DNA of 64,000 nucleotides from Setoptus koraiensis (lineage: Eukaryota; Animalia; Arthropoda): assembly GCA_048013815.1 (NCBI GenBank), contig CM106586.1:16802001-16866000 (forward strand). The letters are read 5' to 3'. A program made the translations under genes and the position numbers. Below the pieces are notes generated by a model, which was given only the letters and a program-made list of their open reading frames with translations, was not told the origin of the DNA and searched no databases. This document shows positions 11,767 to 53,049 of this stretch, piece by piece. How positions within the stretch are numbered: the first letter of the stretch is position 1; each line of letters starts with the position of its first letter.

Positions 11767-14700
11767 ATGGCCATTAACGGCCCTGGTGGTGTGCCCAGTT
11801 ACTACACAGCCAGCCAGCACCAGCAAGACCATAATATTGCATTCATCAACCAGCAAACCAGCAGCAACGGCAAACAACAAAATTTACAACTATTCACTTG
11901 CAACGATTTCAGCAAGCAGCACCAATCATTGGCGCCCATTGCGCCACCGCCAAGGTTACGTCACCACACAACAGTAGCAGCGCCAACAGCGCCGCCGCCG
12001 CCAACAACAACAACAACGGCACCAACAACAACACACAACAGCAACAACAACAACACCAGCAGACTAAATAATCATATTACGTCATCGTCGGTGATAAACA
12101 ACAGCAACCACAATGATTCGCCGCTATTGTCAAACTACAACTACAAATTGTCAACGGCGGCCAACGGCGCCGCCACAGGACCCCAGCGGGGCCACCAGCG
12201 CCGCCAATCGGTGGCTCGCCTGTTGCCCGACATCAGCAAACTGAGGCTGCTCAGCTGGCTGGTGGAGGCCTCAAACGAAATGATAAACTGTGATATGGCC
12301 ATAATGGACGGCGTGTACGCCAAGTTAAATCACAGCCAGGAGTCGCTGTTGTTCTGGTCGGCGCCCGCGCCCCCGCAGCCCGTGGCGTGCGGCGCGTCGC
12401 CCCACCTGTCGCCGGTGGCACCGCGGGCCGGCGGGCTCATGTTCTCAGCCGCGTCAGCACAATCCATCGACAGCAACTCGTCGTCGGGCTCGCTGCGGAC
12501 GCTGCGGGCCCACGAGCACCTGTGCGGCCTCAATTCTGCCTGCCGGCAGCGCCAAGCGGGCGCCGGCTCGCCCAAACTAAACGCAACAAACTATACGCGG
12601 CAAATTAGCGGCAATTGTGAATGTCAATTTCCGGCCCCGGGTGAGCGCCGGGCCGGAAATGAATTGTGCGACAAGACAAACAGTGAGCAATCTAGTCAGC
12701 AACCTAGCGGCAAACGTGAGCAAAAGGCTGCCAAAATGAGCAAGAAACAATTGAAGGAGCAGCGAAAACAGGAAGAGAAACTGAGACAGCAACAGGACAA
12801 ACTGATGTCGTTGTCGCTGGCCAACGACGACGATGTCGCCCCAGTCGACACAACAACAGCGACAACAACAGCAACGGCAACAACAACAACAACAACAACA
12901 ACGGCAACAACCAACGTTCAGAGGCCGGCCACAATTTGTGATCAACACACAACATTGACAAACTGTGAAATCAACCACGACACAGGTGAACCGTCGTCGC
13001 CGCTCGCCTGTGCCGTGCGGCTACCCGTCGACCCGAGCGCGGCCCGGGGCTCGTCGTCGGGCTCGTCCACCTCGTCCTTCATATCGGGCGCCAGCGACCA
13101 CGGCTCGTCGTCGGTCAACTCGACGCCCACCTCCTCGTCGCCGCCAACAATATTTGATTCGCCGCTCACCGACCAACTGCAATTGGTGGCGGCCGAACAA
13201 TCGCCATACGCCATGTTTGCGCACGCGTCGTCGCTGTCGCCCTCGTCGGCGCCCTGCTCGCCCAGCTCGCCCGATCCGCTGCCCGCGCCCGTCGCGGTCG
13301 GCCCGACGAGCGGTGCTGACCAGCAGCAGCAGCAGCAAGCGGCAAGTGCGGCCCGCGCCGAGAAGGGCACCGAAAACATTCTGATGCGCATAATATCGCG
13401 CCTGCCCAAAGATCGCAACAACATAAAGTCGGCCTCGCTGTTGCGCAACCAGCGGCTGTTCTCGTCGAGCGGCGGCCCGGCCGCCGCCGGCGCCGACCCG
13501 AGCGACCTCGAGTCGGCCAAGCGGCTGAGCTTGCGCAACCACGAGAACGCCTCCTCGGCTTGCAGCGAGCCGGGCGCCGTGCGGCCGGAAGTGGAGCAAG
13601 TGAGCAGCAAGTGCGGCGACGATCTCGACCAGGGATTCGAGGAGGACTTCAATTGCGACGACGACTCGCTGTCGTGCTCGCGCCAGGACAGCATCACGCT
13701 GTCGGACAATTTGGTGGGCGCGGCGCCGGGCAGTTGGCCCGGTGCGGACGCCGACCCGCTACCGGACGACCGGCAAGTGGGGGGCGAGGGTCAAGTGCAC
13801 TTGTTTTCAATGGAGCGCACGGGCAGCGCGGACGGGCCGACGGGCATGTGCGTCAGTTTGCACGATCTCAGCGGCGGCCCGACTGTGCATAATAATAACG
13901 ACGACGATAATCATAATAATAATCATGCCCGCTTTTGCGATACCGGTAGTGGGCGGGCGGACGACCCGGCTTCAGACGCGGCGCACCACCGGGTAATGAC
14001 GGCAAACCGGAAGTTGCAGCACTATCAATCATCCAATTCGCTCACCATGTCCAATGTGTCGTTGGCGCCACCGTTTGCGTTGCAAAATAAATCCTGCCAA
14101 TGTTACGAGGAGCGCCAGTGCCGGCTGCTGGCGGGCCAGTCGTCGGGCAGGCGGCGCGCGTCCGTGCAGCGGCGGCTGGCCGCGCGCAACCCGTTGCAAC
14201 AATCTCACAACAACAACAACAACAACGCCAACAACGGCGCCGGTGATACAAACAACAATGACGACGGATTAGCGGATTCGGCGTCGCTGTTGTCGGGCCA
14301 AAATAGTCAGACGAGGCCAATTATGAGCGCGGCCACCCTAAGTGATATTATCCGTCAAATAGTTATGGATCACAACAAATTAAGCCGGCTACTGCAATCG
14401 ATCATAACGCGATACGACGCCGAGCGACTGCTTGTCATGTCGGCAACAGCTGACCAGCAGCACCAACAGCAACAACAGCAACCACATCAGCAACAACAAC
14501 AGCAACAACAACAACAACAGCAGCAGCAAGATACGGCCGGCGAGCAACAGCAACAACTGCTGAACAACGGTCATCGCATCGACATCAGTGCCATTCTGAA
14601 CGCGCTCGACGAGTGCTCTTGCAATTGCCACCACCACAACCGTCACCACCACCACCACCACCATCACCACCACCACCACCACAACAACCAGTCGCTAATC

Positions 14701-15455
14701 GGCTGCTCGGCGCCCGATCACCTGTTGCGGCAATCTCACCTGTTGAAACAATCGCCGGCCGACAGCGGCCAGCCAATGAGTTTGTTGACGCCGTCGAGCG
14801 AGCGCCAGTTGTGTCAATTGGGCGACTCGTTCGGTCAGGCGGACAGTGATACGACAACAACAACAACAACAACAACAACGGCAACAACCGCGCAGCAAGC
14901 CAACAACAACAACAACAAGTCCGTGAAGCGCCCCAAGCGGTTCAAGGGCAAATCGAAGAAGAACAACAGCGGGCACGACGACGCCGCCTCCGTCCAGCTT
15001 CCGGCCAAATGGTGCGAAAATTGCAGCGAGAACCACTTTGAGGCCTGGTTCGAGAGCGTGGCCGCGGCGCACGACATGACCGACCTCACGGGCCACTTTT
15101 CCGCCGCGGACCACGTGACAACGGGGGGCGGTGGCGGCAAAATGTCAAACAACGGCAAGCAGCAGCAGCAACAGCAGCAGCAATTGAACGTGGGCCAAAA
15201 GAACGCAAATCTCATCAAGCTCATTCAGCAAGAGGTCAGGGCGACCCTGCTGAGGTCCATTGAATTGATTGACCTGATCAGAAAGCAGATAAAATCGCCA
15301 GAGTCCATTCAGCAGCGGCACCTGTTGCGTTGCTTCGCAAACTCCATTCACCTGTTGACAAGTGTTGGCTGTTACGTGATGCCGGCGCAGGATGTTTACA
15401 ATCATTTCAATCAGTTGATTACCAGCAACGCAAACGGGCCCACCAATTCAAGCGC

Positions 15456-15495
<40 letters not shown>

Positions 15496-17019
15496 GGCGG
15501 CGGCCTCAACAACAGCAACAACCACCACTCGAACAATGCCAGCAACATCAACTGCACCATGAGCAACAACAACAACAACAGCAACGGCCATCAGACACAC
15601 AGCACAACCTCAGCTCACCACCACCACCACCACCACAATTACCTGGCCAGTGGTCACTACAATGCGGCGCCTAGCGGCCTGTGTCGCTTGCCACCTAGCG
15701 ACTTTGACCACAATCATCATGTTTTATTGCAGCAATACGGCAGCGGCGGCGGCGGCACATTGTCGTCTTCGTCGTTGTGCAACAATGGCGTTGATTACGC
15801 AATGGCCGGTTGGCCGCACAATAACTCGACAGCGGCATCAAACAGCAGTCAAAATCAAAATCACAGTCAGCAGCAGCAGCATCTGGGCAAACAACAACAG
15901 GGCAACAATTTGCAAGGTTTGCAATTCAACAGAGACAGACAACACTCGGCCTCCGTGAGGCTGCAATCCGTGCACTCCAGTCAAAACAACAACAACAGCA
16001 ACAACAACAGCAACAACAACAGCAACAGCAACAACAACAGCAACAACAATGCCGGCTATTGCGCCAACTACAACGCTAACAAGCTGGCCCAATCGGGCTA
16101 CGCGACCCACAACGACAACAATAGCTCGTCGTCGTCGTCGTCGTCCTCCTGTCACTCGCAACAATCGTCCTCCTATTACCTGTCGACGTCGTCATCTTCC
16201 TCGTCATCATCGCCAATATCTTCGCCGCCTGTTTCGTGTTTGTCCACAACGCAAACAACGCCAGCGAGCGTCGCCAACAGTCAGCTGATTGTCAACTGCG
16301 GCTCTCCGCTGGCACTGTCCACTGGTTGTTGTTTGTATCATCAACAGCAACAACAACAGCAACCGTTATTAGCTTTACACCGTCACAATCAGGCTAGTCG
16401 TCATCATGTTTACCTCCAACAGCAACAGCAACAACAACAACAGCAGCACCAGCACCGTCTCAGCCATAACTCACCGGCCTCCATGTCGCCCAATTCCTCG
16501 GTTTATTCTTTCAGATCGTCGGCCACATTCTCGGGTCAGCCGTCGCACAGTTTCCTCAACCGCGACGCCTATTCGCCCATTAATCACAACAACTTGTCGC
16601 AGCACCACCATTCGGCCACCATTGGCAGTCCGTTCAATTTGCACCCATTGGCCGACGCAACGCATTACCTGGCCAACAACAGCAACAGCAACAACAACAA
16701 CAATTATTTTCCCAGCAACAACAACAACAACAATAACGGCACAAACGGCAACGGGCTCAAGTTTTGGCAGTCGCCAAAATTCAATTTTATACGCAAGATC
16801 TGGCATGTTCGCAGGCAACGGCTCATGAGGCAACAATCGAAAGACAGGAAATTGTACAACAACAAGATACAGAATAAACTCAAATTGGTTATTGGCGATT
16901 ACGTTCACTTTCACAAATCGCAGACGTTGTTGAACACGGAAAACGGCATTAATTCGTTGTGCACATCAATGAAGAACGCGCTCGAATTTGGTCTTTACCT
17001 GTCGCAAAAGCTCTATTAA
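11767..17019 (+). CDS. Hypothetical 1750-aa low-complexity protein (poly-Q/N/H/T/S tracts with short helical islands), single exon
   Basis: 5.25-kb stop-free frame with an ATG in an aaaactATGG context. Repeat tracts stay in frame, and GC-rich coding-like segments separate them. No family recognised. Confidence 0.8.
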
Positions 17020-17638
17020 CACACGCAAGCACCTGTCTCGTCGTTATTATCCGTCTTATTAACGGGCCAGTGATCGGCGTGATGATAGCCATCGACGACG
17101 GCACGATAACGGACGACTTGCGACACGACCTGGGCGCGCCAACTGCACACTGATTGTGATCTAATTATCAGTGCGACTTAATTGTTAATTACCATAACTG
17201 CTGTTGTTGCGCAACAACAACCGTGAGCATCGATGAACGACAGCGGCCGTCACTGGCCGTCACTGGCCGTCATTGGCCGTCATTGGCCGATACACGACGA
17301 GCGAGCGACCGGCGAGACCAGTGAGCAGTAAGTGATTAGCGCCGAAATGTATCGAGATTTTATTTTATTACTGCGCTGCAAATGGACACGAGAACGCAAA
17401 CGAAAACTGGAATGCATGATATATAGATCACGATTATAATTATGGCTGCACCACTGCTGCTGCTGCTGTTGCGATTATGATGATTGCGGTTGCCAGAAGA
17501 ACAAATTGCGCAACAAAAGCAACCACTTTTGCCTCACTGACAAGCACCAGCGAACAGCGAAATATCAACAACTGCCGCCTGTCGCTGGATCACAACAATG
17601 CCGTGTCGTGTATCATTAGCCATGAACAACAACAACAA

Positions 17639-17685
<47 letters not shown>

Positions 17686-18479
17686 ACAACAACAACAACG
17701 ACAACAACGAGCCGCTTATTGATTAGTATCGGAACTAGTTGCGCAACAGCGACAGTTCGACGGTTGCTGCGCGTTGCCGGATTGGTCGTCATCGTCGTCG
17801 TGTTCCTTTTTTATTGTCTAACATTAATTGATAGCACACCTCTTATTGCAACTATATATTATTATACATAAATAAACATTTGTGTTAATTGACACAACAA
17901 CAACAACAACGACAAGCGCACACAATCAATTTGGCCTCGAATGTCGCTTTCGAGAGCTCCCCTTCGTTCTTTGCACCATTCTTTTCGCTGTTCTTTTCGC
18001 TGTTCTTTTCGCCATTCTTTTCATGTGTGGCTTGCGTGTGTGTGTCTGAGTGTGCCAACAAGTGCTTTCAGACGGCAGTTGCATCACCTATTCACAAGTC
18101 ACCTATTGAGTCGCTCTAACAACAAACACACACTGTGTCAGTCAGTGGCAACGAGCAATATAAATGTTTCCGTCGTCAAGCTAGCTTGCCGCCACGGCAA
18201 CACCAACAACGGCAGCCAACATCGATAGGCATGAATAATCTGTGTGCGAAAACATACACAACGAATCATACTATTGGCGTGTGGCCATAGAAAATTGGAC
18301 TGTCTATTTTCGGCATTGTTTTCGCTATTTTCACTGTTCCCGACCGAAAAACGGAGCCGCTAAAAAGATTCGGAAAAAGAGTCGAAAAAAGTCCAAAAAA
18401 GAGTTGGAAAAAGAGTCGAAAAGAGATGGAAAAAAGGGTAAAACCCTAAAAACGAGATTTTCGTGGGCACTAGTTTTAG

Positions 18480-18626: not shown

Positions 18627-20918
18627 TCAGATATTTCTGACGGATCGCTCTTTCACCACGGGCACGAGACCTTCGATTATGGGCCGAGCCTTGGGCACGA
18701 GAGCGTCCACACCTTTTTTGCCGCCCCCGTTAGCGGCCACAATTAGTCCCGTCACAGCGTTCATGGAACTCATGAAGGCGCCCTCTAGCCAACCGCCCAA
18801 ATGAGAATAGCTGTCGCCAGCCAAAAAGAATCGATTGTCGAGCTCGCCATCGAGGGCGTGCGTGTGATAACGGAAACACAGGTGAGTGTTGAAATGTCCG
18901 CCTGCCGAGTCCAGTTTGAAGGCGCCCGAGGCGTGACTAGTGTTCCAGTCGTACGACAGTGTTTGCGTCATGTGTCGCTCTCCTTGGTTGCCCATCAATT
19001 GTCCGAACCACCAGCGCTTGTATTCGCCATCGAGGGGGTCCTTGACGTCGTGCACAGTGTGATTTATAATGTTCGTGATCATTTCTTCATGTTTTTTCGG
19101 TTCTGACTTGTCCCGTTTAGAAATGGGGTACGTCTTGAGCTTGTGCTGCAGCCTTTTGGTGTCGTCCTCCCACGCGTAGCTGATTAGAAAACTGTAATAT
19201 TTGGGGTTTTCTTTGTCATGCAACGAACTGGGCACAATGTAACTCGAGCCAAGCCCACAATCCGATACAACGGCCTTGATTTTTTCTTGCTTAAATTCGT
19301 GAGCGTACTTCTCGAAAACATCCGCCTTAATGGTGCCGAAAATCTTGGACGAGCCAACGAGATTCAATTGATTGATGGCGGCAAAGATATTTACATTGAC
19401 AGGCTCGAATTTGTCGCTCAACATGAGAGCCGGCCTCACCGAAATCGCTCTATCGGCCTGCCGAGCGAAGTCGCCGATAGTGACATCGTGTGCGCGTCCC
19501 GAAAAACCGGCCCGACGAGTTATAGAGCTCAACTGATGCGGCGGCACTGCCAAAATGACGTAATCGTGTTCGTTTTGCAACAGGCGATTCTCTTCTTTTC
19601 CGTAAAAGAAAACTTCTTTCTTGTAAAAGAAAACGAGGGCCTTCTTGGATCCGACACCGTCGCCGGTGTGACAGACATCGCAGACGCGCCCTCGAACGAA
19701 ATCGACCTCGAGGTTCTCATTGTTGCATATGGATTTTTCATAGAGTCCACTGATAAATTCAACGTTCTCCCTGACGGGGAGCGTGAATTCGTAGCTATAA
19801 CTCCACAGGATCAGGCGCATCATTTCGAGAATGGACATGTTGAACAGCGGCTTGAAGCTGCCCGTGCCAAACCCGAAACAGCCGAACAGTTCCACGCAGT
19901 AGTTGAGCTTTTCGTCGTAGTCCTCTAGCCCTTCGATTTCCAGCGGATTCTTTAGTTTTTCCCTGAGGATCATGTTGACTGCCGACCCGAGAGTGAGATT
20001 ATCGTATTTGTTGACAAATTCTTTCCAGCCTCGCTGAATCTCTTCAAGTTTTGAGGGTGTAATTTGGTCGCTTTTGAGGTCTTCACTGATTTTGGCCGGA
20101 TCTTTGCCAGCTATCTTGAACATACTGATGTTGATGTTGTCAAGATGTTCGTTAGTTTTCTCGTCCACACCATACCCTTTCCCTACTAACCCGTCGGCCA
20201 CCCATTCTGAGACTTTTTTAGTGAGCGAATCCTTTTTATCCCATTTGCCGGCTGTGTACCTGTCGACACGATCGCCGAAAACAAACTCGGTAGGAACCTT
20301 GCCGGGGTTGGGAAAGACACCAATGGGTGCATCTTTTCCGAACACAGCATCGACGTATTTCCATGTGAGGCCAGCGATTTTCGGAAAACGCATAGCGCCG
20401 ATCTCGTAGACCGCGTGGTCGCGTTTTGATTCGGCTCCTCTGCTTCTGGCTGCGAACACCCTGCCAGCTCGCTTACATTTGGTGTCCACAGTCGAGAAAT
20501 TTACTGGAGTGCCGCCAGTTAATGAGCACACTCCGTGTTCCGAAGAGCAAAAAGAGAAATGATTCGGGTCCGGCTCGTATACTTTGACACGAATTTTTCC
20601 CGATTTTCTCGCTCGGGCCACCTTTGACAGCTCGTACAGGGAGGCAATGCCCGACGCGCCACCACCAACGATCGCGATGTTGAAATCTTTGCCCTCTGGT
20701 AGCGTGCCAAGAGCCTCTTGGTTCTGAGTGACGTCGGCGTATGGCACGTGCAAAGAATCTGGATGCCGATAATATTTGCCGTCACCAATGACCTCAGAGA
20801 CCTTTTTCGGAACATCGGGACGTATCCCAATAGGCTTCGCCGATTTTGAACGGATACTAATCAGCATGTCCTCCTGAACAGGCTCATCGATGAGCCTCGG
20901 CATGACGGTAATACCCAT
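18627..20918 (-). CDS. Phenylalanine 2-monooxygenase precursor (proPAO)-like flavoenzyme, IaaM/tryptophan 2-monooxygenase family, copy A (763 aa)
   Basis: FAD motif IAIVGGGASG; EIGAMRFP; FPNPGKVPTEFVFG; GFGTGSFKPL; GSSK; SYAWEDD; GAFKL; LCFRYHTHAL; SYSHLGGWLEGAFMS. The N-terminus MGITVMPRL...RHPDS matches the recalled Pseudomonas sp. P-501 proPAO start (MGVTVIPRL...RHPDS). Intronless, CAACAATGG start context. Confidence 0.93.
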   Translation of the reverse strand: MGITVMPRLIDEPVQEDMLISIRSKSAKPIGIRPDVPKKVSEVIGDGKYYRHPDSLHVPYADVTQNQEALGTLPEGKDFNIAIVGGGASGIASLYELSKVARARKSGKIRVKVYEPDPNHFSFCSSEHGVCSLTGGTPVNFSTVDTKCKRAGRVFAARSRGAESKRDHAVYEIGAMRFPKIAGLTWKYVDAVFGKDAPIGVFPNPGKVPTEFVFGDRVDRYTAGKWDKKDSLTKKVSEWVADGLVGKGYGVDEKTNEHLDNINISMFKIAGKDPAKISEDLKSDQITPSKLEEIQRGWKEFVNKYDNLTLGSAVNMILREKLKNPLEIEGLEDYDEKLNYCVELFGCFGFGTGSFKPLFNMSILEMMRLILWSYSYEFTLPVRENVEFISGLYEKSICNNENLEVDFVRGRVCDVCHTGDGVGSKKALVFFYKKEVFFYGKEENRLLQNEHDYVILAVPPHQLSSITRRAGFSGRAHDVTIGDFARQADRAISVRPALMLSDKFEPVNVNIFAAINQLNLVGSSKIFGTIKADVFEKYAHEFKQEKIKAVVSDCGLGSSYIVPSSLHDKENPKYYSFLISYAWEDDTKRLQHKLKTYPISKRDKSEPKKHEEMITNIINHTVHDVKDPLDGEYKRWWFGQLMGNQGERHMTQTLSYDWNTSHASGAFKLDSAGGHFNTHLCFRYHTHALDGELDNRFFLAGDSYSHLGGWLEGAFMSSMNAVTGLIVAANGGGKKGVDALVPKARPIIEGLVPVVKERSVRNI

Positions 20919-21015
20919 TGTTGATGATTTAGATGTTACTTTCGCGAATAAAACTGATTCTTTCGGTTTGGATAACTTCGAGCTTGATTGTCCGATGACA
21001 CTTTGAAATTTGACA

Positions 21016-21370
21016 ATGAGGTTTTGACCTGTGAGTTGTGACGAGTGAACTTTGACGATTTAGTTTAGATTTTCAAGTTTTGACTGTTGAGTTTTGACTG
21101 GGAGTTATTGACTAATGGTTTCTGACTATCATGATTTGACTGTTGGTTTGATTATCTATTTGTTTAATTGTCTGATTTGAGCAAGTCAATTGAATTGAAG
21201 CTTAAACTTTAACTGATGATAAAATGCTCTGAAGTGAACGGTCTTTTATATTGTCTTACATCGAGGACAACCAAAAAATAGTCTCACACATAGCCATCGT
21301 GAAGCACCCAACGATGCACTCGAGTCGAGCGCGTGTGACAAGGCTACAGTACGCACAGAAAGTATGAAAC
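21016..21370 (-). repeat. Duplicated 5' leader/promoter block of copy A (paralog of 24851-25245)
   Basis: Near-identical to the block upstream of copy B, including an 84-nt perfect match (21016-21099 = 24851-24934). Confidence 0.9.
21211..21250 (-). promoter_or_regulatory. TATA box (TATAAAAG) plus arthropod-type initiator (TCATCAGTT) for copy A
   Basis: The minus strand has TATAAAA starting at 21250 and TCAGTT at 21216-21211, 33-36 nt downstream. The arrangement is identical in copy B. Confidence 0.7.
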
Positions 21371-21428
21371 AGTGGTGGCTATCAAGAAAAACTAAAAAAA
21401 AATACTCCATGCCAATTCTCTTTTTTCC

Positions 21429-21899
21429 CGAAGCACGCTCGGCGACGAGCTTGATGAAAAGTCGCCCACTTATGTCATTCAGAAGTTGGAGACAAGAGGG
21501 CAGAGAATCAGAAAAGGGTGTCTCTGGAAAACACCAGTTCCTTCGTTATTAGTCGTAAAGACATACAGGCTTACAAGGAAACCTCCTTGTTAGGCAGTGA
21601 AAAACTGAAAGATGCCGAATCTTCGGAAGGAAGTTTCAAGAGATCCAGTGAGAAATAGGTATAATTCGTTGATGATATCGTCAACCTCAATTTGGAGTTG
21701 TCGGTTAGAGCGCGAAAGAGTGTGCCAACATGAACATGCTCATTGCAGTCACTCGATAGAATTTCGAACCTTCGAAATTCGATTGGTTGAGATTCGAAGG
21801 TCCGTCCAAGTTTCTCGGAACCATCGAGGCAAAGCGAGCAGCTTGCCCGCGATGGATGACGGTGCCTTCGACAAGATGGCTTGGCCATATTTATATTGA
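21429..21899 (+). pseudogene. Heavily deleted inverted remnant of the monooxygenase gene (psi-D)
   Basis: + strand patches translate as RSTLGDELDEKSPT (copy B: RYTRNDWLNEDSPT), GPSKFLGTIEA at 21799-21831 (copy A: GSSKIFGTIKA) and WLGHIYI (GLGSSYI), with stops and frame changes between them. Confidence 0.65.
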
Positions 21900-22079
21900 T
21901 TTGCTTGTGACTGGCACACACCGCGCCAGACCAACAGGTGAGACGAGTTTAGCGCTAGCAGCGCCGAGCCATTGCCAAGTTGCGACAGCAGCAGTGAGTG
22001 TGTTCGCATGTCAGTGGTGAAACAATTCTTTTATGCGTTCTTTTTTGACGTCTCTTTCGAGCGCGTTCTCTTCTGTGAC
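21891..22079. repeat. Conserved non-coding block Q1 (paralog of 26336-26605)
   Basis: Shares tgtgactggcacac, gccagaccaacaggtgagacgagttt and gaaacaattcttttatgcgttc with Q2. Confidence 0.85.
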
Positions 22080-22400
22080 TCACAGACTGTGAGAGCTTTT
22101 CTGTGGAGTCGTGGGCTGCGTCTCCTGTTCACTGCCTGTTAGACTGTACCGCGTGGAAAACTGTACCGCCGATGTCTCCGACTGTAGTTCAAAGAAAGGA
22201 CGGGAGGGGCGCTCACATAAGTCGATAAATGCATCAAGAGCTTAGGTCACCTGGGTTAGGTGTTGCGATAAAGTTACGTTTCTAGTTTTTTTTTCCTGCT
22301 AACTTGTTTTTCATTCATTCCATATCGCGCACGAACCTTTCACACGCAGAAAGCGACTTCAAACGATTCTTTCTTGAACTACAGCGATTATCGCAACTTT

Positions 22401-22406: not shown

Positions 22407-22460
22407 ATTACTGTTACATTATTACACAATGGGTATTTTATGGCTGGAAATCCGAATTAT

Positions 22461-24707
22461 TCAGATTTTTCTGGTGGATCGGTTTTTCACCACGGGCTCG
22501 AGACCTTCGATTATGGGCCGAGCTTTGGGCACGAGAGCGTCCACACCTTTTTGCCCGCCCCCGTTAGCGGCCACAATTAGTCCCGTAACAGCGTTCATGG
22601 AACTCATGAAGGCTCCCTCTAGCCAACCGCCTATGTGAGAGACGCTGTCTCCGGCCAAAAAGAATCGATTGTCGAGCTCGCCATCGAGGGCGTGCGTGTG
22701 ATAACGGAAACACAGGTGAGCGTTGTAATGTCCGCCCGGCAAGTCCATCTTGAAGGCACCCGAGGTATAGCTGGTAGTCCAGTCGTACGACAGCGTTTGT
22801 GTCAGGTGCTTCTGGTGCTCGTCGTCGGCCATTAGTTGTCCGAACCACCAACGTTTGTATTCGCCATCTTCGGGGTCCCTGACTTCGCGCACAGTGTGAT
22901 TTATGATGCTTGTGATCATGTGTTCGTGTTTTTTCGGCTTGGACTTACCCGCGTGGTTAATGGGGTACGCCTTGAACTTGTGTTGCAATTTTCTCGAGTC
23001 ATCATCCCACGCGTAGCTGATAAGAAAACCGTAATATTTGGGGTCACTTTTGTCGCCCAGTGAACTGGGCACAATGTAACTTGAGCCGAGCCCACAATCC
23101 GATACGACCGCTTTGATTTTTTGTCCGTGAAAATCGCGAGCGAACCTGTTGAAAACGTCAGCCCTAATGGTGCCCCAAACCTTGGATGAGCCACACATGT
23201 TCACCTGATCGATGGCAGTGAAGATATTCACATTGACAGACTCGAACTTGTCGCTCAACATGAGAGCCGGCCTCACCGAAATCGCTTTATCGGCCTGTCG
23301 AGTGTAGTCGCCAATTTTGACATTGTGAGCGCGTCCCGAAAAACCGGCCCGACGAGTTATAGAGCTCATCTGATGCGGCGGCACCGCCAGAATGACATAA
23401 TCGAATTCGTCGTGCAAAAGGCGATTGTCTTCCTCTCCTCTTTCACTCCTGTAATAGAAAACTAGAGCCTTCTTGAGTCGGGCATTGTCGCCGGTGTGAC
23501 AGACGTCGCAAACGCGCCCTCGAACTACTTCGACCTCAAAATTCTCATTGTTGCAATGGGATATTCTGAACAGACCCCTGATGAATTCGACATTCTCCTT
23601 GACAGGTAGCGAGAATTCATAGTCGTAGCTCCACAAGGACAGGCGTATCGTTTCTAGGACGGATGTACTGAACTCGGACCTGACGCCTCCCGTGCCAAAC
23701 CCGAAACAGCCGAACAGTTGTACGCAATATTGTAGCTTTTCTTCGTCGCTTTCTAGTCCTTCGATTTTCAATTTTTTCATTTCCGCCAGTTTGGTCTTGA
23801 GAACCTTGGTCACTGCCGACCCCAGGCTGAGATTGTCGTGTCTCGTGACGTATTCTTTCCACGCTCGCTGCATCTCTTCAAGATTTGAGATTTTTTCGGC
23901 TTTGAGGTCTTCGCCGAATTTCGCCGCATCTTTGCCGTTGATCTTGAACTCGTCCAAACAAACATCTGGAAGCGGGTTTCCCTTTTTGTCTTTGTACGGA
24001 TTTCCTATTAGCGCATCATTAACCCATTTCGAGACCAGTTTAGTGGGCGAATCCTCATTCAGCCAATCGTTGCGTGTGTACCTGTCGACGCGATCACCGA
24101 AAACAAACTCTGTAGGGACTGTTCCGGGGTTGGGAAACTCGCTTATGATGGCGTCTTCGCCGAACACAGCCTGAGCGTATTTCCACGTGAGCCCGGCAGT
24201 TTCCGGGAAACGCATGGCTCCTATCTCGTAGACAGCGTGGTCCTCTTTAATCACATCGCCCTTACTTCTGGCTGCGAACACTCTACCGGCTCGCTTACAT
24301 TTGGTGTCCACCTTCAAGGAATTCAGCGATGAGCAGACTCCAAATTCACAAAAAGAGAAATGATTCGGGTCCGGCTCGTATAATTTAACATGGATTTTCC
24401 CCGATTTTCTCGCTCGGGCCACCTTTGACAGCTCGTGCAGGGAGGCAATACCCGATGGGCCACCGCCAACGATTGCGATATTGTAATCAACGCCCTCTGG
24501 TAGCGTGCCGAGAGCCTCTTGGCCCTGGGTGACGTCGGCGTATGACGCGTGCAAAGAATCAGGGTGCCGAAAGTATTTGCCGACACCACTGACTTCCGAG
24601 ATCTTCTTTTTGAGAATTACATGGGGAATGGCCGATTTCGAAGTGCTTCGAGGGATATAAGCCTCAGGAGCACCGGCGAACAGTCTTGGCATCATGGTAA
24701 TACCCAT
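22461..24707 (-). CDS. Phenylalanine 2-monooxygenase precursor (proPAO)-like flavoenzyme, copy B (748 aa), with altered substrate pocket
   Basis: Same motif set as copy A. The true ATG is at 24707 (CAAAATGG context, MGITMMPRL); the track's start at 24737 is a TTG. Intronless. Confidence 0.93.
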   Translation of the reverse strand: MGITMMPRLFAGAPEAYIPRSTSKSAIPHVILKKKISEVSGVGKYFRHPDSLHASYADVTQGQEALGTLPEGVDYNIAIVGGGPSGIASLHELSKVARARKSGKIHVKLYEPDPNHFSFCEFGVCSSLNSLKVDTKCKRAGRVFAARSKGDVIKEDHAVYEIGAMRFPETAGLTWKYAQAVFGEDAIISEFPNPGTVPTEFVFGDRVDRYTRNDWLNEDSPTKLVSKWVNDALIGNPYKDKKGNPLPDVCLDEFKINGKDAAKFGEDLKAEKISNLEEMQRAWKEYVTRHDNLSLGSAVTKVLKTKLAEMKKLKIEGLESDEEKLQYCVQLFGCFGFGTGGVRSEFSTSVLETIRLSLWSYDYEFSLPVKENVEFIRGLFRISHCNNENFEVEVVRGRVCDVCHTGDNARLKKALVFYYRSERGEEDNRLLHDEFDYVILAVPPHQMSSITRRAGFSGRAHNVKIGDYTRQADKAISVRPALMLSDKFESVNVNIFTAIDQVNMCGSSKVWGTIRADVFNRFARDFHGQKIKAVVSDCGLGSSYIVPSSLGDKSDPKYYGFLISYAWDDDSRKLQHKFKAYPINHAGKSKPKKHEHMITSIINHTVREVRDPEDGEYKRWWFGQLMADDEHQKHLTQTLSYDWTTSYTSGAFKMDLPGGHYNAHLCFRYHTHALDGELDNRFFLAGDSVSHIGGWLEGAFMSSMNAVTGLIVAANGGGQKGVDALVPKARPIIEGLEPVVKNRSTRKI

Positions 24708-24850
24708 TTTGGATGTTTTTCGTTGACACTTTGACAAATAAAACTGTTTCTATCGGGTTGAATTACTATCTGTGGCTTGATTACTTGGTATCACTTGGGA
24801 TTTTGACTATGGGATTTTGACCATGGGATTTTGACTATGAGGTTGTGACT

Positions 24851-25245
24851 ATGAGGTTTTGACCTGTGAGTTGTGACGAGTGAACTTTGACGATTTAGTT
24901 TAGATTTTCAAGTTTTGACTGTTGAGTTTTGACTAGGAGTTCTTGACTAATGGTTTCTGACTACCAGTTTTGACTGTTGGTTTGATTATCAATTTGTTTA
25001 ATTGTCTGATTTGAGCAGGACAATTGAACTGAAGCTTTAACTTTAACTGATGATAAAATGCTCTGAAGTGATTGGTCTTTTATATTGTCTTACATCGAGG
25101 ACAACCTAAAAATAGTCTCACACATAGCCATCGTAAAACGCCCCTCGATGCACTCGAGTCGCCCGATCAACGAGTTGCGTAATATCGTTACATGACATTT
25201 GAGCGCGTGTGACAAGGCTATAGTACGCGCAGAAAGTATGAAACA
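24851..25245 (-). repeat. Duplicated 5' leader/promoter block of copy B
   Basis: Paralog of 21016-21370, with a B-specific 40-nt insertion at 25161-25200. Confidence 0.9.
25045..25084 (-). promoter_or_regulatory. TATA box plus initiator for copy B
   Basis: TATAAAA at 25084-25078 and TCAGTT at 25050-25045 on the minus strand; same spacing as copy A. Confidence 0.7.
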
Positions 25246-37625: not shown

Positions 37626-39992
37626 ATTTCGACGGGCCGCCTTGTGGGCTTCTGCCGGTGTGATTGGCGCGGCCGCCGGCAGGTGATTGATCGTTGGCAG
37701 GCTGACAAATCTATTAATAAATCCGGTTGGTGATAACATCGTAAAAATTGCCATCATAAATTGCGCGCCTTTGCACTACTGTTGCGAGTTTGTCAGCGAG
37801 TCGCCAACAGCCAGACCAGAATAGCTCCAAAGCGAGGCAAAGAAAAGCAGGCCGAAAATGAAAATAAAAATAAAATTAAACGTGCACCAATGACGAAATT
37901 AGGAGCCAAAAAACAAAACTTTCCCAGGCGATTGATCATGGCACGACGATGACAGATTGCATTGGCCGCGTAATTAGTCGTCGCGTTGCGTCATTTGCAG
38001 CCATTCTGACGACATTATCAGATTATTACATTCAGATACAGTGTTCAGATACAGTGTTGAGATACGCGGACAGCGACGCAAAATGTCGCTGTCTCGCTGT
38101 TTCTGTCTGTTTGTGTATCCTTTATCTGGCTGCGGCCAGACTGACCGAGTCGTGATTCGCATGCCAATTCGCTCGAACCTGTGAATAAATAAATGTGTCA
38201 ACCTGTAAATGAATGCTAATCGCCAGAAACAGCTAATCGGCTCGCCTGTTTCGAAGCGTGTTATCAGTTTGCGACAGTGGCCGATAACGGCGACACTCGT
38301 GCCAGTGCCAACGGTGACAGTAGTGACAGTAGTGACGGTCGCGACAGTGCCAACGGTGACAATTGCGAGCCGATTCAGTTGTCAGTTTCGAACGATTCGA
38401 CCTTCGCTGCGGCCGCGATTCACCTGTGGTCGCTCACCTGGTGTCGTAGCGCATTGTATTTCGACAATTTCTGGCCGCCATCCATTCAATGTATGCGGCT
38501 TTGTTTTCGCAATTATACTAAAAAAATATTAATTAAATATTCTGGGATTTCTCCACTTTGCGCGACTTTGCGTCGACGGCTGCCGACATTGCGGGCCAAT
38601 GTCATTTGTCTGACCAATTTGTTTGGCAAGCCACATCCATGACGCCATCTGTCGGTGCGGTGGTGCGACTTCAGCTGGTCATGTCGTTGTTCACAACTCG
38701 CATATGTATCGCATTGATCAGGTTGATACGAGTAGTTGTTACATTATTAGTCAGTATATATTATATTACTTTCTCATTATGTTTGTATTGGCTGACAAAT
38801 AATCTGACAATAATCTGTGTATCTGTGATGCCAGCAGCCAGCTAAACAATAACAAATAGGTACACGCGAGAACAATTATGCGATGCTACGAGCCACTCGA
38901 ACAAGAGCAACGAGATCATTCAATTCGAGCTGGCCCTCAATCGAGTGAGTCGAATTCTGGCAAGCTTTACATTATTATTACTTATTTGTATGTTGCGTCG
39001 AGCGTTCTCACAGCGCAAATCACTGACTGACTGATAATTTACGAAGCTTTGCCCTAGTGTTTGTACACCCAACACACTTGTTGCTGTTGCCAGACGATTG
39101 GCTGACAATTGTAAGCCAACAAAATATTACACGGCCTGCATATGCCGCCTACGCTCAATAATAATAGCTCGCTGTCTCGCGCATTGACGCCTTGATGTTG
39201 TCGTTGTTGTTGTTGTTGTTGTTGCTGGCAAAAATGTACCACTTTTCACATTATTCACATTATGCAATGCGTTGCGCTTGATTGAAATGCATAATGGCAG
39301 CAGCAACCATAATAATAACAATATAATGATAGTGATGATAATGTTATTCATCAATCATTTGGCTTTTTGATTTTTGGCACAAACTCTTTATTGTTATCAC
39401 TATTATTATCGCTGTTTATTATTGCCACCACTATTACATTGCTATCTGCTGGCGCTGATATGCAATGGGCCGCTTGCATGCATATTGTGCGTGAACTATA
39501 CGCAAACGCTCTCTTAATTAATCGCGTCGTCGCCCAACCGCCACAAACCTGACAATTGTAATGTAATCTTGTGGCAAGCTAATTACTGGCCAAAAATAGA
39601 GTATTCGCCGGCAACAACTGTGACCGAGAGGCCAATTTAATCGCTTGCCGCATCATTAGGCGGCCGGTTGCGGGAGGCGCGAAAATGGTTTTCGTATGTT
39701 GGTTTGTTCAAAGCGTGCGCCACAATAATGAACTGTGATTACATCATGATGATTTCATAAAAACAAACAAACAAGTGATTTTTCGTAATGCGATGAAGAG
39801 TTAAAAATAGCCGAGCTTCGCCCGGTGCCTGCTGTACCACACAACAACAGTAGCAACGGCAACAGCGTATATGGCAGTAGCGATTTGTTGGTGGCAATTT
39901 GTTTGTACGCAAATCACGCAACGGGTCACACCATATCGAGTTAATCGTCGTATCGTTATAAAATAATAATTCAGTTTCGTGAACTCGCAAAC

Positions 39993-40826
39993 ATGCTGTC
40001 CTTGTTATCGGCCGCATTTGCATTCTTATTAGTATTGGGAGCCTCGCCCGCTGCCAACACTAACACTGTGCCGCCTTCTACTCTGGACGAGGCCAGGGAT
40101 GCCCTGTATAAGATTATCCAAACAAGGTATCCCAAGTATTGTTCGCTGGATCAGGTGGAAAAATTCAATAAATTAGCATATTCGCTGAGAAGTTCAAGCG
40201 ATTTGGCCAGGGCGAAACAACTGAACAATATTCTAGACGAATATCGGGCACAAGTGGAGAATATTTGCGACAGTGTATGGAGCGAAAAATTGAAATTTGA
40301 TGCTCGTCATGGCAACAAATTCCATGAACGTGCCAAAATTGTCACCAATTTTGAGTCGGTGAAAAAAGAATACGATCGCGCCTTCGACCTTGGCTCTCCG
40401 TTCAGGATTGTTAACATTCTTGAGAAATACGTTGCCAAACATAGGAGTTGTAAGCTGCACAAGGGCAAGGGCAAGGCACTGAAAGAACTCTATTCGGCAG
40501 CCTTAGAACTCGCCGAGATTATTCGCAACGACATGGGCCACATACTGGAACCGAGAGGACCATTGAGTTCAAACGATACGCATCTGAGAGAGTTGTATGA
40601 TACATGTTCGTTTATCACCTTCGCCATACCATTGTATACGGCTAGAGCTTTGCCAGATAAACCGGCCGCAACAACACTGGCCTCAGCCGACACCCCGGCC
40701 TCCATAGATTCTAGATACAGACCACAGCTTGACGAATTGACTGCCAGGCTGGTCAAGAAAACAATTAGAACAATTCGTTCCGAAGGGGCACTGTTGCTGT
40801 TAGAGACAATGAATAAAAAGGCGTGA
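39993..40826 (+). CDS. Orphan secreted protein (277 aa, signal peptide, probably helical), single exon
   Basis: ATG in a CAAACATG context; hydrophobic N-terminus MLSLLSAAFAFLLVLGASPA; non-repetitive coding-like composition with 4 Cys. No family recognised. Confidence 0.75.
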   Translation: MLSLLSAAFAFLLVLGASPAANTNTVPPSTLDEARDALYKIIQTRYPKYCSLDQVEKFNKLAYSLRSSSDLARAKQLNNILDEYRAQVENICDSVWSEKLKFDARHGNKFHERAKIVTNFESVKKEYDRAFDLGSPFRIVNILEKYVAKHRSCKLHKGKGKALKELYSAALELAEIIRNDMGHILEPRGPLSSNDTHLRELYDTCSFITFAIPLYTARALPDKPAATTLASADTPASIDSRYRPQLDELTARLVKKTIRTIRSEGALLLLETMNKKA

Positions 40827-40994
40827 GTGTCTCGAAACATGAGCCTCATTTCATCGGTTTCTTCTGAAATTCAGAGTCTGAATTGAGATTCTGTTTACCA
40901 CATTTTTTTACACATTGAGCATTGATACATTAGTGCTGCGGACGGACGGCTGTGAACAACAATTGCGGGTGGTATTTATACCAAATGATCGACC

Positions 40995-41119
40995 TAGTCT
41001 CGTATGGATGCAATTTATTGATTGTTTATTAATTGCATTCATACGAGACTATGTTTGATAAATATCGATAATAGTTACGTATGAATGCAATTTATTTATT
41101 AATTGCATTCATACGTAAC
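40995..41119. other. Two adjacent hairpins sharing the same arm sequence
   Basis: Stem 40995-41015/41031-41051 (21 bp, one G:T) and stem 41074-41092/41101-41119 (19 bp, perfect). Confidence 0.85.
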
Positions 41120-41913
41120 ATTGTTTAGATTTTGATCATTCAACAACGGCCGCCCAAGCTCGGCATGCCCACTGCCCAAATTCAATCCGATCGCAGCGCT
41201 AAGCTGAACCAATTAATGATAAATTGTTTGCGATCACCATGCTTATATTTCTCGCAGAGAAAACTGACGTAATTCTCATCGGACGATCTTATCTTGTTTT
41301 GTGAGTTAGCCATGATATTTACACAAAACTGAACTGCCAGCACGAACAGAGCTATATGCTGCAATCAAGCAGATACACTTTTTTGCTGAATCTCGTCTTT
41401 TGAATGAGAACGATGAGCACTGAAGGAAACTAGTATGGAATCTTGTAGGCCGATACGATTTTCATAGTACAAGTCACCGGTTATTGACTGATCTGATGAG
41501 CTTCTGCAAGATCGAAACGCACTGGATAATGGTGACATGTGAGTCATAATGAGCCCGTTCATGTCTCCGTTAAATGCTTTATTTAGATGATTCATCATTG
41601 CTATCGATTTCGGTGATTCGCCGTCTTAAATGAGTGAGTTTATATGAGATGTAGATATGTAGAGCCAATAATATACAAATTGTCTCCCTAATGCTCGCCA
41701 AATCATTTGATATCCAACAACAGATTCGACAAAACTAGAACAAAGCGATAATAGTCAAACAGCCGCATTCAAAAGTCTCCCTTGTTATTTGAGCTAATTC
41801 CTGATTCACAAGCGTTGTTTAGCGTGATCTACAGATCAGGGAGGCCTTCGACGAGCACAATTGCATTATAATATCCATCTTTCTGGATTCATGATCAGCC
41901 GGTGTCGACGGCA

Positions 41914-43749: not shown

Positions 43750-43870
43750 AAAAGAGAGGAGCAAGAAAACCCATGTTTACCCAATTTTATCGCGTAGAGA
43801 TAAGATTTAAGAGCAAAAGATTGCACAAAAAACGAACACTCTCAGCGACCGAGGCTAAAAACTTTTGCTT

Positions 43871-44236
43871 CTACGATCGTTCGGAATATACCGAATCATT
43901 CGACTGCGTAATTAAAAATTCCCTGTAAAATTCTGCGTCAGATTTGTTGCGGCCGAAATAAAAAATTGCTTCTTCTATCAAACAGGCGTCTTTGTTGACT
44001 ACATTTGTTTCTGATTGGGGTAGGCGAAAACTCGAGGACCTCTTTTCTCCGAAAAACACATCCAGTGAGTTTATGTGCGAGACCCGCCAAACTTTGGCGA
44101 CCGAAGTACAGGGTGTGCGCACGAGTTTCGGCGTCATCAAAATAGTGATCATATGATTTCGGGTGAGCACATGTTTTTGTTTTCTGAAGAAAATCGGCTT
44201 GATTCGAGGTGCAAATGCATAATTAATTGTGCTCAT
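43871..44236 (-). CDS. Possible small hypothetical protein (121 aa), head-to-head with USP39
   Basis: ATG-started, non-repetitive ORF 108 nt from the USP39 start; no recognisable motif. Confidence 0.25.
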   Translation of the reverse strand: MSTINYAFAPRIKPIFFRKQKHVLTRNHMITILMTPKLVRTPCTSVAKVWRVSHINSLDVFFGEKRSSSFRLPQSETNVVNKDACLIEEAIFYFGRNKSDAEFYREFLITQSNDSVYSERS

Positions 44237-44344
44237 ATTTAACGGTGCACTGGTATGGGTCTATTTTAACGATTATTATCATCATTAGTTGGATATTCAT
44301 TCATTAATTTATTTATTGTCACAATCAATTAGCCAGCGCCGGCA

Positions 44345-45793: not shown

Positions 45794-46391
45794 AAAGAAG
45801 TGTAAGCGAGTGTTGCAGTTTATTTATATAAATAAGAAAATAACAATCAATAATAACAATAATACATCACGATCGTACCAGATCAATCAATTGTGATGTA
45901 AAATTGCATATATTTAGTGAACTAGATCGAATTAATTCAAGAGGAGCAACACTTATCTATACTTTGATTATTGTAATCTCAAACTTTCGATCTAACTCAC
46001 GAGAGATAAATCTTTATGAAGTTATTACTTTCAATCAATATCAGAATCATTGATAAACAATTAAGTTCATTGGTATGGTCTATATATATGAATGTGTTGT
46101 TGTGTGTTTCTTGAAGATACGTCTCGATCGTTGCTTGGAAACTAAGAAAGATAATAATAATGATATATAGACAGATAGTGTTATTATGTCAAACTATTCT
46201 GTCTGTGACGATTTGTCTGGCATATAAAATGAAGATAACATAAGATAAATAAAAAACAACAATATCAAAACAAAGAAGTCGTATATAAATGGTTTTGCAA
46301 AATGATCTAGCTGATTTAACTTGACTACGTAGTTACATAAAATTGTTGTTATTTATTAATGATTGAAATAAAAGCGGAAAATTGACAAGAC

Positions 46392-52680: not shown

Positions 52681-53049
52681 ATGGATCAACAATGTGATAA
52701 AATAGACCTGTCCGACTGGACAAAGGATCAAATAAATGGGAAAATGAATCAACTTTTTAGTAAACTCATCATAGACGTGGATGCCAAAGTTATATCTGTT
52801 TCAGAGACCCAGTCAGAATTAGATCTACAACTAGACAGACTAATCAAAACGTTGGATGAAATTAAACTGAACGACAAACTGACTAATCACATCAATGTCA
52901 ATTTCAAGAGACTCTACGCACTTAAAAGGCGACTGACACTAATACACACTATACTTAGTAATTCCAGTTCCAGATGCAAGAGACTTCTTGCGGCCAATCG
53001 ATCCACAGTGGCCTCTCTATCGCAGCTTACATTAGGCCCCAGTCAATAA
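52681..53049 (+). CDS. SNAPIN: SNARE-associated protein Snapin (BLOC-1 subunit 7), intronless
   Basis: The two coiled-coil helices DVDAKVISVSETQSELDLQLDRL and KRLYALKRRLTLIHTILSN resemble Snapin (LDSHVHAVRESQVELREQID; KKLLNARRRVVLVNNILQN). Confidence 0.8.
   Translation: MDQQCDKIDLSDWTKDQINGKMNQLFSKLIIDVDAKVISVSETQSELDLQLDRLIKTLDEIKLNDKLTNHINVNFKRLYALKRRLTLIHTILSNSSSRCKRLLAANRSTVASLSQLTLGPSQ

Follow-up and report, generated by a model that had tools for sequence, protein, structure and literature searches.

A remodeled substrate pocket in one of two tandem phenylalanine oxidase-like genes of a mite, with a possible shift toward cationic amino acids

The window analyzed here, a stretch of 64,000 nucleotides from the mite Setoptus koraiensis, contains two neighboring genes for FAD-dependent amino acid oxidases/monooxygenases, hereafter copy A and copy B, which differ in the loop that lines the substrate pocket. 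The question raised by this locus is whether the two copies oxidize the same amino acid or whether the pocket of copy B was altered in such a way that it now accepts another substrate.

The gene pair, its origin and its maintenance

Judging from their translations, copies A and B are intact homologues of the L-phenylalanine oxidase (PAO) of Pseudomonas P-501. The two proteins are 70% identical and are encoded in tandem by intact open reading frames, in an animal genome setting with USP39-like, M13 peptidase and cytochrome-b5 reductase genes as neighbors. The flanks of the two copies are 91–97% identical, whereas the central coding part remains divergent. Copy A, the unchanged sister at a distance of 3.8 kb from copy B, serves as an internal control. 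Residue numbers of copy B are counted from the ATG at 24707; a TTG start upstream would add 10. The coordinates of all features are collected in Table 1.

Table 1. Features of the gene pair and of the pocket region (positions within the window)
Feature	Position	Strand	Basis or remark
Copy B CDS, PAO-family FAD amino acid oxidase/monooxygenase, 748 aa	22461..24707	-	ORF and 2yr4 match; ATG at 24707
Copy A CDS, PAO-like paralogue, 763 aa	18627..20918	-	ORF
Block upstream of B, part of the duplicated unit	24846..25245	.	93–97% identity with the A upstream block
Block upstream of A, counterpart of the B upstream block	21011..21371	.	Same duplicated unit
B pocket loop, V342-R343-S344-E345-F346	23670..23684	-	Codons GTC AGG TCC GAG TTC
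A pocket loop, F355-K356-P357-L358-F359, family-typical	19842..19856	-	Codons TTC AAG CCG CTG TTC
Val342 (GTC), pocket wall at the plug-loop end	23682..23684	-	Alignments and PMC5832979
Glu345 (GAG), ceiling of the side-chain pocket	23673..23675	-	Ungapped HMMER alignments and PMC5832979
B GFGTGG plug loop, G336 to G341, as family consensus	23685..23702	-	Invariant columns; plug loop per PMC5832979
A S354 (GTGS; G354S), A-specific, at a 98% conserved plug-loop Gly	19857..19859	-	Family columns
B E330Q, at a Glu conserved in PAO, TMO and L-AAO/MOG	23718..23720	-	B-specific
B M353T and M354I (LEMMRL to LETIRL), helix after the loop	23646..23651	-	B-specific columns
B M654 (FKL>FKM; L654M), two residues past the aromatic-cage Phe652	22746..22748	-	Also in X1 and X4 contigs
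B V689 to I692 (SYSHL>SVSHI; Y689V, L692I)	22632..22643	-	Copy-A letters in X1 and X4 contigs

Copy B matched PAO (PDB 2yr4) with an E value of 1.5e-157 over residues 49–752, at about 40–45% identity. The best PDB match of its AlphaFold model (pLDDT 89, pTM 0.93) in a Foldseek search was likewise PAO (2yr5, TM 0.93); the N-terminal extension, residues 1–30, was modeled with a pLDDT of 57–71. Enzymes of the PAO family are made as proenzymes that become active when an N-terminal prosequence is cleaved off. The FAD-binding GxGxxG motif (IVGGGPSG) and the C-terminal GD...GGW...EGA motif (AGDS..GGWLEGA) are found in both copies, at invariant columns. All 45 family-invariant residues are kept in copy B, including R166, Y565, W567, F652, G694 and W695, the counterparts of R102, Y416, W418, F473, A515 and W516 in the lysine 2-monooxygenase-type enzyme L-AAO/MOG, for which roles have been described (PMC5832979). 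The set comprises the residues that handle the alpha-carboxylate and the alpha-amine, with R166 and Y565 binding the former, as well as the aromatic cage. Since the catalytic residues are unchanged, copy B should still oxidize L-amino acids at the alpha-amino group; oxidative decarboxylation would yield an amide, and/or a keto acid and H2O2 would be formed.

In the family tree, A and B are sisters nested in the PAO family with 100% support, and the nearest relatives of the mite pair are bacterial, one flanked by IS elements (P0001) and the other located on a P22-like prophage (P0002). The pair goes back to a PAO-type gene that was horizontally acquired from bacteria and then duplicated in tandem. 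The A/B comparison gave a dN/dS of 0.34 at a dS of 0.54, and the branch of B (0.26) is twice as long as that of A (0.13). With its intact ORF, this dN/dS and the invariant residues kept, copy B is a working gene that is selectively maintained under purifying selection.

The bases of the copy B loop are covered by contigs of three other public runs with zero differences and are therefore not an assembly error. In one run of unknown type (X1), contigs cover both A and B in their genic parts, with none over the 1.2-kb spacer, and it is on this coverage pattern that their reading as RNA rests; their depth over B is similar to that over A. Copy B is probably transcribed. A further run that is labeled as RNA and has the species label of X1 (X13) contained zero reads and thus offered no test of expression.

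The pocket loop of copy B

An earlier note on this DNA had described the segments GTGS-FKPLF in copy A and GTGG-VRSEF in copy B, and the minus-strand translation agrees with it at both places. Between the two loops, 6 of 15 bases differ, and all but one of these six differences are nonsynonymous. A compensated frameshift was considered as the source of VRSEF and rejected, because the codons of A and B align base for base and differ by point substitutions.

To place the loop on solved enzymes, ungapped HMMER alignments around the invariant GFGTGG were used. They matched E345 to L319 of PAO, V247 of TMO and D238 of L-AAO/MOG (chain index 258 in the alignment, the offset being a 20-residue tag), and V342 to F316, F244 and W235 of the same enzymes. 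Superposed structures give the same equivalences, with Asp238, Leu319 and Val247 on one another and with loop position 1 forming the pocket wall as Trp235, Phe316 or Phe244 (PMC5832979). The earlier note had stated that an F-x-x-L/V pattern lines the aromatic pocket in PAO/IaaM, and that the second Asp of GTGG-WDSDF in L-AAO/MOG holds the cationic end of the substrate; the published structures bear out both statements, with Phe316/Leu319 and Phe244/Val247 as the lining pairs and Asp238 as the acid in question (PMC5832979), and the Glu of copy B occupies the position of this Asp in a gap-free alignment, as had been claimed. In the model of B, residues 343–345 form a helical turn, so that residues 342 and 345 (i, i+3) would share one face, like F316 and L319 of PAO. 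We infer that Glu345 faces the pocket in copy B.

The family comparison sets this loop apart. Among 81 full-length family members, the loop reads F(Y)-K/R-P/S-L/I/V/F-F/Y/other, with positions 1 and 4 conforming in every case, and the Phe at position 1 is 99% conserved in outgroups; the loop of copy B is unique among the 81. By plain outgroup comparison, which was used to polarize the changes, Val342 and Glu345 are derived states, while A keeps F and L. In all outgroups, 122 columns are strictly hydrophobic, and E345 of B is the sole polar or charged residue that either copy has in them; the outcome was the same with 190 columns that are at least 90% hydrophobic. Three fragments (P0088, P0090 and P0095) were examined as mite orthologues and rejected; their loop, where present, reads FKPL. 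When residues 328–372 of B were searched against 5.8 billion proteins, one candidate and no hit were obtained, by a word sampling that missed known relatives. The switch of the copy B pocket that the earlier note had proposed is supported by a Glu345 that is derived, unique in the family and aligned without gaps to the specificity position.

Beyond the family, 8 cluster representatives of the superfamily carry Asp at position 4, and one of their clusters has a member named lysine 2-monooxygenase by its source; apart from a single one with Asn, every other representative with a readable loop has a hydrophobic residue there. The NCBIfam names of the Asp-bearing superfamily members were uninformative. 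Two residues earlier these enzymes carry N, D, G or Q, whereas B has Arg343.

The functional weight of this position is known from mutagenesis. Asp238 of L-AAO/MOG binds the epsilon-amino group of lysine and also the terminal group of Orn or Arg; D238A has a ~20-fold higher Km, D238E is active on Lys and was reported as more active, and D238F changes the substrates to Leu, Met and Phe (PMC5832979). The D238F variant also gains cadaverine activity, and most replacements at site 238 (K, V, N) are inactive. Among the fold matches, some PDB titles name a glutamate oxidase R305E mutant with bound L-arginine and a lysine oxidase D212A/D315A mutant with bound Phe or Tyr. As precedents in more distant relatives, these titles show by analogy how acidic pocket residues can toggle between basic and aromatic specificity.

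Outside the loop, the two further differences listed in the earlier note, FKL>FKM and SYSHL>SVSHI, are both present in the window. The former is shared by other samples, whereas the latter is not fixed: the SVSHI difference is polymorphic or strain-specific. The excess of B-specific over A-specific changes was borderline, at 57:44 (p 0.23), 60:36 (p 0.018) and 56:36 (p 0.047), and at columns that are at least 95% identical B departs 12 times and A 8 times. A clustering of the B departures at the loop reached a nominal p of 0.024, which became 0.16, no longer significant, after correction for scanning all windows.

Candidate substrates of copy B

The best explanation overall is that copy B is a maintained PAO paralogue in which the wall and the ceiling of the pocket were replaced, with a shift to cationic substrates, and we assign it a probability of about 0.45. 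After the tandem duplication, Phe was replaced by Val342 at the wall and an aliphatic residue by Glu345 at the ceiling, with the FAD motif, the alpha-group residues and the aromatic cage left as they were. What would set B apart is the carboxylate of Glu345 at the bottom of the pocket, and its most likely effect would be a preference that shifts from Phe, Tyr and Met to substrates with a positively charged end, namely Lys, Orn and Arg. Copy B would then have arrived at the solution of the lysine 2-monooxygenases by an independent route. It probably acts on a different amino acid than A, likely a basic one, and Glu345 may be the residue that selects it; we tentatively predict that copy B favors Lys, Orn or Arg.

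PAO-type enzymes act as oxidases/monooxygenases on Phe and Tyr, and the activity of the lysine 2-monooxygenase type is restricted to Lys, Orn and Arg. The hydrophobic pocket of PAO, with the equivalents of Phe316 and Leu319, is found in A (F355, L358) and not in B (Val342, Glu345). Among the lysine 2-monooxygenase-type features, B has the acidic residue at the Asp238 position, in the form of Glu345. The narrow hydrophobic lysine tunnel that Trp235 and Ala515 form in L-AAO/MOG (PMC5832979) is not seen in B, where Val342 and Gly694 are as in PAO or smaller, and by sequence B lies outside the lysine 2-monooxygenase clade, at 16–17% identity and as sister to A inside the PAO clade. Features of the pocket, too, speak against a shift to cationic substrates: it stays as wide in B as in PAO, with Val and Gly in place of the Trp and Ala of the lysine enzyme, and Arg343, two residues ahead of Glu345, could neutralize its charge.

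The wide pocket also bears on the possibility that B has remained an enzyme for aromatic or heteroaromatic amino acids and now favors the ones whose side chain ends in a hydrogen-bond donor (Tyr, DOPA, Trp, 5-hydroxy-Trp or His). Here a ring OH or NH would be hydrogen-bonded to Glu345 as the acceptor, and the change from Phe to Val342, a smaller wall residue, would admit a larger ring; Gly694 is equivalent to Gly659 of PAO, the aromatic cage and W567 are retained, and Tyr, and to a weak extent Trp, are substrates of PAO itself (PMC12724004). However, among the solved relatives compared, no acid at this position serves an aromatic substrate, the Trp enzyme TMO having Val, and an acid at site 238 has been documented solely as binding a cationic group; we consider this reading unlikely. 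It is also rather improbable that B has gained no new specificity and is instead relaxed, weakened or catalytically poor, or that its Glu345 is neutralized by Arg343, the gene being kept as a young duplicate or as a partner subunit of A. The longer branch of B, its larger number of departures at highly conserved columns, a dN/dS above that of a typical core enzyme, the loss of activity with most replacements at site 238 of L-AAO/MOG and a possibly compensating change from K to R343 beside the new Glu are all consistent with such a copy. On the other hand, the ORF has remained intact through a dS of ~0.5 with all invariant catalytic and FAD residues kept, the coding center is divergent in spite of the near-identical flanks, and the RNA-like contigs extend over B at a depth like that of A. 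Moreover, the single radical change falls on a known specificity switch, for which the random odds are 1 in 122 to 190 hydrophobic columns.

A cationic but non-standard compound, such as a diamine, an agmatine-like molecule or a plant non-protein amino acid, for example canavanine, appears very unlikely as the substrate of B. The cadaverine activity gained by L-AAO/MOG D238F indicates that site 238 influences the acceptance of amines, but the alpha-carboxylate binders R166 and Y565 are kept in B and favor alpha-amino acids. Returning to the shift toward basic amino acids, it is possible, at somewhat less than even odds, that the animal made one copy of an acquired and duplicated bacterial phenylalanine oxidase into a Lys/Orn/Arg oxidase or monooxygenase, mainly through one carboxylate at a known switch position.

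If this is true, the locus would represent a clean natural neofunctionalization of a horizontally acquired gene by one or two pocket residues, and nature would have run the laboratory D238F switch in reverse. Copy B would be the first enzyme of the PAO family for cationic substrates, extending the substrate range of this family, and biosensor enzymes for Lys, Orn or Arg could be built on it as a new scaffold. The foreign genes of this animal would contribute two chemistries rather than one auxin-precursor activity in double dose, and two distinct amino acid-derived products would result: A might yield an arylacetamide, for instance, and B 5-aminovaleramide, a piperideine carboxylate or H2O2.

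Comparison with known enzymes and acquired genes

The closest solved relative, PAO of Pseudomonas P-501 (PDB 2yr4, 2yr5, 3ayj), is homologous to the mite proteins over their full length and has the GFGTGG plug loop, the alpha-group residues, the aromatic cage and the N-terminal extension in common with them; both of its pocket residues, Phe and Leu, are shared with copy A. It differs from B at Phe316 and Leu319, where the Val/Glu state of B was seen in none of the other family members compared, and the mite genes differ from it in forming a tandem pair in an animal genome.

The lysine 2-monooxygenase-type L-AAO/MOG of Pseudomonas sp. AIU 813 (PDB 3we0, 5yb6-8) is, like B, a member of the PAO/TMO/L-AAO-MOG branch within the flavin amine oxidase fold. 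It reaches a TM of 0.72–0.74 to the model of B and has an acid at the same loop position. It is only ~17% identical to B, which is ~190 aa longer, and carries Trp235, Ala515 and Asp236 where B has Val, Gly and Arg. Since B nests inside the PAO clade, any resemblance to L-AAO/MOG would be convergent. TMO/IaaM of Pseudomonas savastanoi (PDB 4iv9), at ~18% identity, is a further member of this fold branch; in its loop, GSGG-FLPVF, Phe244 and Val247 line the indole pocket, with a hydrophobic residue where B has Glu.

Genes comparable in history are the PAO/'tms1'-like genes of insects (Planococcus citri and sciarid flies), which are of bacterial origin, reside in arthropod genomes and often occur in several copies (PMC5322300). 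They share a 25-member clade with the mite pair but lie on a separate branch and, unlike copy B, all of them have a hydrophobic residue at loop position 4.

Predicted position of Glu345 in the substrate pocket

HMMER alignments were gap-free across the loop that directly follows the invariant GFGTGG motif. They place V342 of copy B at the pocket wall, together with F316 of PAO (L-phenylalanine oxidase of Pseudomonas P-501), F244 of TMO (tryptophan 2-monooxygenase) and W235 of the lysine-type oxidase/monooxygenase L-AAO/MOG, and E345 at the pocket ceiling, together with L319, V247 and D238, respectively. W235 and D238 correspond to chain indices 255 and 258 (20-residue tag offset, checked on R102, Y416, W418 and F473). 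The same equivalences are given by superposed crystal structures of L-AAO/MOG ligand complexes, where VGFGTGGW is a mobile plug loop and Trp235 forms the pocket wall (PMC5832979). In this enzyme, D238A raised the Km about 20-fold, D238K, D238V and D238N abolished activity, D238E surpassed the wild type in activity on Lys, and D238F shifted the preference toward Leu, Met and Phe (PMC5832979). Because of these structures and mutants, loop position 4 is an experimentally proven specificity switch within this fold branch, and the background facts given in the earlier note, hydrophobic residues in PAO and TMO and a second Asp in L-AAO/MOG, are correct. More distant relatives behave likewise: the Foldseek matches include an arginine-bound R305E mutant of a glutamate oxidase and a D212A/D315A mutant of a lysine oxidase with bound Phe or Tyr.

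The AlphaFold model of copy B (57-sequence alignment) had a mean pLDDT of 89 and a pTM of 0.93. In the Foldseek PDB ranking it came closest to PAO (TM 0.93), followed by TMO (0.76) and L-AAO/MOG (0.72-0.74). In sequence, too, copies A and B were both much weaker matches to TMO (4iv9) and L-AAO/MOG (3we0). The model has a helical turn at residues 343-345, so that residues 342 and 345 would share one face, like F316 and L319 of PAO. The premise that this loop position sets specificity is supported by the published structures and by the family-wide comparison.

Rarity and polarity of the pocket change

The two copies lie head to tail, 3.8 kb apart, and their proteins are 70% identical. Translation of the loop codons confirmed the coordinates of the earlier note exactly; 6 of the 15 bases differ between the copies, five of them nonsynonymously.

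Coordinates of the two oxidase genes and their pocket loops in the window
Feature	Positions	Strand	Details
Copy A ORF	18627-20918	minus	763 aa
Copy B ORF	22461-24707	minus	748 aa counted from ATG
Alternative copy B start	24737	minus	in-frame TTG upstream of ATG, +10 codons
Copy A pocket loop	19842-19856	minus	F355-K356-P357-L358-F359 (FKPLF), codons translated
Copy B pocket loop	23670-23684	minus	V342-R343-S344-E345-F346 (VRSEF), codons translated

Among 81 full-length family members other than the mite pair, loop position 1 is always Phe except for a single Tyr, and position 4 is Leu (58), Val (14), Ile (8) or Phe (1); copy A has Phe and Leu. As the outgroups and copy A are hydrophobic here and the two copies are sister genes with full tree support, Val342 and Glu345 arose on the copy B branch after the duplication. 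Across the 122 columns where every outgroup has a hydrophobic residue, E345 of copy B is the only polar or charged residue in either mite copy, and it is still the only one when the threshold is relaxed to 90% hydrophobic (190 columns). For one radical replacement to hit the only documented switch residue by chance, the odds are roughly 1 in 122 to 190. Copy B departs at 12 of the 143 columns that are at least 95% identical in the family, F342V and K343R being two of them. Cluster representatives of the wider superfamily carry Asp at position 4 in eight cases (loops of WNTD- and GQD-type), one of these clusters holding a member named lysine 2-monooxygenase by its source, and Glu in none.

In copy A, S354 (19857-19859) stands at the final Gly position in the GFGTGG plug loop, where 98% of the family has Gly, and given this G354S change copy A does not simply represent the unchanged ancestral type. 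Its two pocket residues match those of PAO, which makes Phe, Tyr and Met-type substrates a reasonable expectation.

Outside the loop, the FKL to FKM change (M654 of copy B) was found in the window and, like VRSEF, is common to all samples, the loop letters being unchanged in contigs from three further public sequencing runs. The change from SYSHL to SVSHI (V689, I692), which the earlier note had listed as well, is present in the window but was not counted toward a fixed change of the pocket. Two of the other runs, X1 and X4, have a contig on 22414-22720 that carries copy B letters at the distinguishing positions within 22414-22524 and copy A letters at all 12 within 22553-22653 (V689Y, I692L and Q719K), with an adjoining 3' UTR of B type. 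The X1 depth of this contig (50) is close to the sum of the A and B contigs starting at the homologous points 18857 (23) and 22691 (22). In X1 and X4 the 3' ends of the two copies are therefore one sequence, and copy B has SYSHL there and Lys instead of Gln at position 719, so that SVSHI is strain-specific or polymorphic. This points to a gene-conversion tract at 22525-22720 that differs between samples.

The upstream blocks of A (21011-21371) and B (24846-25245) share 93-97% identity and the final 300 coding bases (18627-18926 and 22461-22760) 91%, whereas identity drops to 75-81% in the central coding part. Either gene conversion is homogenising the flanks, or strong constraint acts on the regulatory DNA; in both cases the two copies probably share regulation. 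Homogenised flanks around a divergent centre fit selection keeping A and B different, but do not prove it. A block that is single-copy upstream of A (21011-21131) occurs three times upstream of copy B (24818-24966), the copies overlapping and spaced 14 nt apart, which is a short tandem expansion in the 5' region of B.

Family and genomic setting

The PAO family is small: an exhaustive HMMER search through 1.84 billion cluster representatives yielded only 14 clusters at E <1e-30. The closest relatives of the mite pair are bacterial (54-58% identity), and the copies of mealybugs and sciarid flies, known or presumed bacterial transfers (PMC5322300), fall on separate branches of the same 25-member clade. 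The closest bacterial homologue (locus L001) is ringed by IS transposases, and one of the two closest (49% identity; L005 8001-10202, L006 8001-10202) is carried as cargo by a P22-like prophage, with tail-spike/tail-assembly genes on one side and the integrase on the other; in bacteria the family is therefore mobile. At columns with 88-96% conservation across the family, both mite copies show the same departures (N>Y, Y>F, H>K, R>H and D>G; for example Y363/F365 in WSYDYEF, K176, H604 and G659 in copy B). These changes date to the long stem (0.45) that followed separation from the bacterial relatives, and two of them fall in the stretch aligned with the surroundings of L-AAO/MOG Cys254, a residue governing the oxidase/monooxygenase balance.

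The window is animal DNA. Its ORF density is low, and the best named matches of the USP39-like neighbour are from acariform mites and ticks (62-64% identity). A block at 38000-56000 with a GC content of 36-42% contains ordinary animal genes (USP39-like, M13 peptidase, cytochrome-b5 reductase), and GC is 46-56% outside it, foreign gene pair included. Just upstream of the pair, a 1750-aa ORF (11767-17019, plus strand; GC 0.54-0.61, strong A-over-T skew) has no match in Pfam or NCBIfam and is followed by CAA/CAG repeats at 17615-17716. A literature search found no description of a PAO-like gene in eriophyoid mites, and the Aculops lycopersici genome paper names only UGT and pantothenate genes as transfers. 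An 11.4-kb Logan contig from another public run (P0250) encodes a USP39 protein 90% identical to that of the window, which means that sequence data exist for a close relative of this animal. As our searches found no PAO-like protein above 58% identity, that relative may not have the pair, or its copy may be unassembled.

Predicted function of copy B

The alpha-carbon chemistry of copy B would be unchanged, because it retains the aromatic cage and the residues that bind the alpha-carboxylate and alpha-amine. In the simplest reading, the carboxylate at the pocket ceiling would select a cationic end group, since this is the sole documented role of an acid at this site and Glu is functional there in L-AAO/MOG. 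Glu345 could also serve as a hydrogen-bond acceptor for Tyr, Trp or His, or pair with Arg343. We consider a substrate profile materially unlike those of copy A and PAO to be likely (probability about 0.7); a preference for Lys, Orn or Arg is a more tentative prediction from the sequence, somewhat short of an even chance. The shift toward basic amino acids proposed in the earlier note is a well-motivated hypothesis.

Copy B may instead be weakened, or act as a partner subunit. Its branch is longer than that of A (0.26 vs 0.13) and its lineage-specific changes are more numerous, with borderline count tests (p 0.018 to 0.23). Its ORF is intact, A-B dN/dS is 0.34 (dS 0.54), and 45 of 45 family-invariant residues are kept in both copies, including the FAD motifs, R166, Y565, W567, F652 and G694-W695. 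Runs X4 and X8 also cover the A-B spacer and are DNA-like. In run X1, coverage is confined to the genic stretches of A and B, with nothing at 21150-22349 and adapter at a loose end, so that this run is RNA-like; this coverage pattern suggests, with moderate confidence, that both copies are transcribed at similar depth.

Compared with known enzymes, copy B is a PAO-family member by descent but lacks the hydrophobic-pocket feature of that family, while it shares only one of three pocket features with lysine 2-monooxygenase, by convergence. It keeps the wide pocket of PAO: the wall Val is less bulky than Phe or Trp, and the cage Trp is preceded by Gly instead of Ala. This pocket and the two other possible roles of Glu345 speak against a simple copy of the lysine enzyme. 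Copy A is the same as PAO at both pocket residues, but has its own rare substitution in the plug loop.
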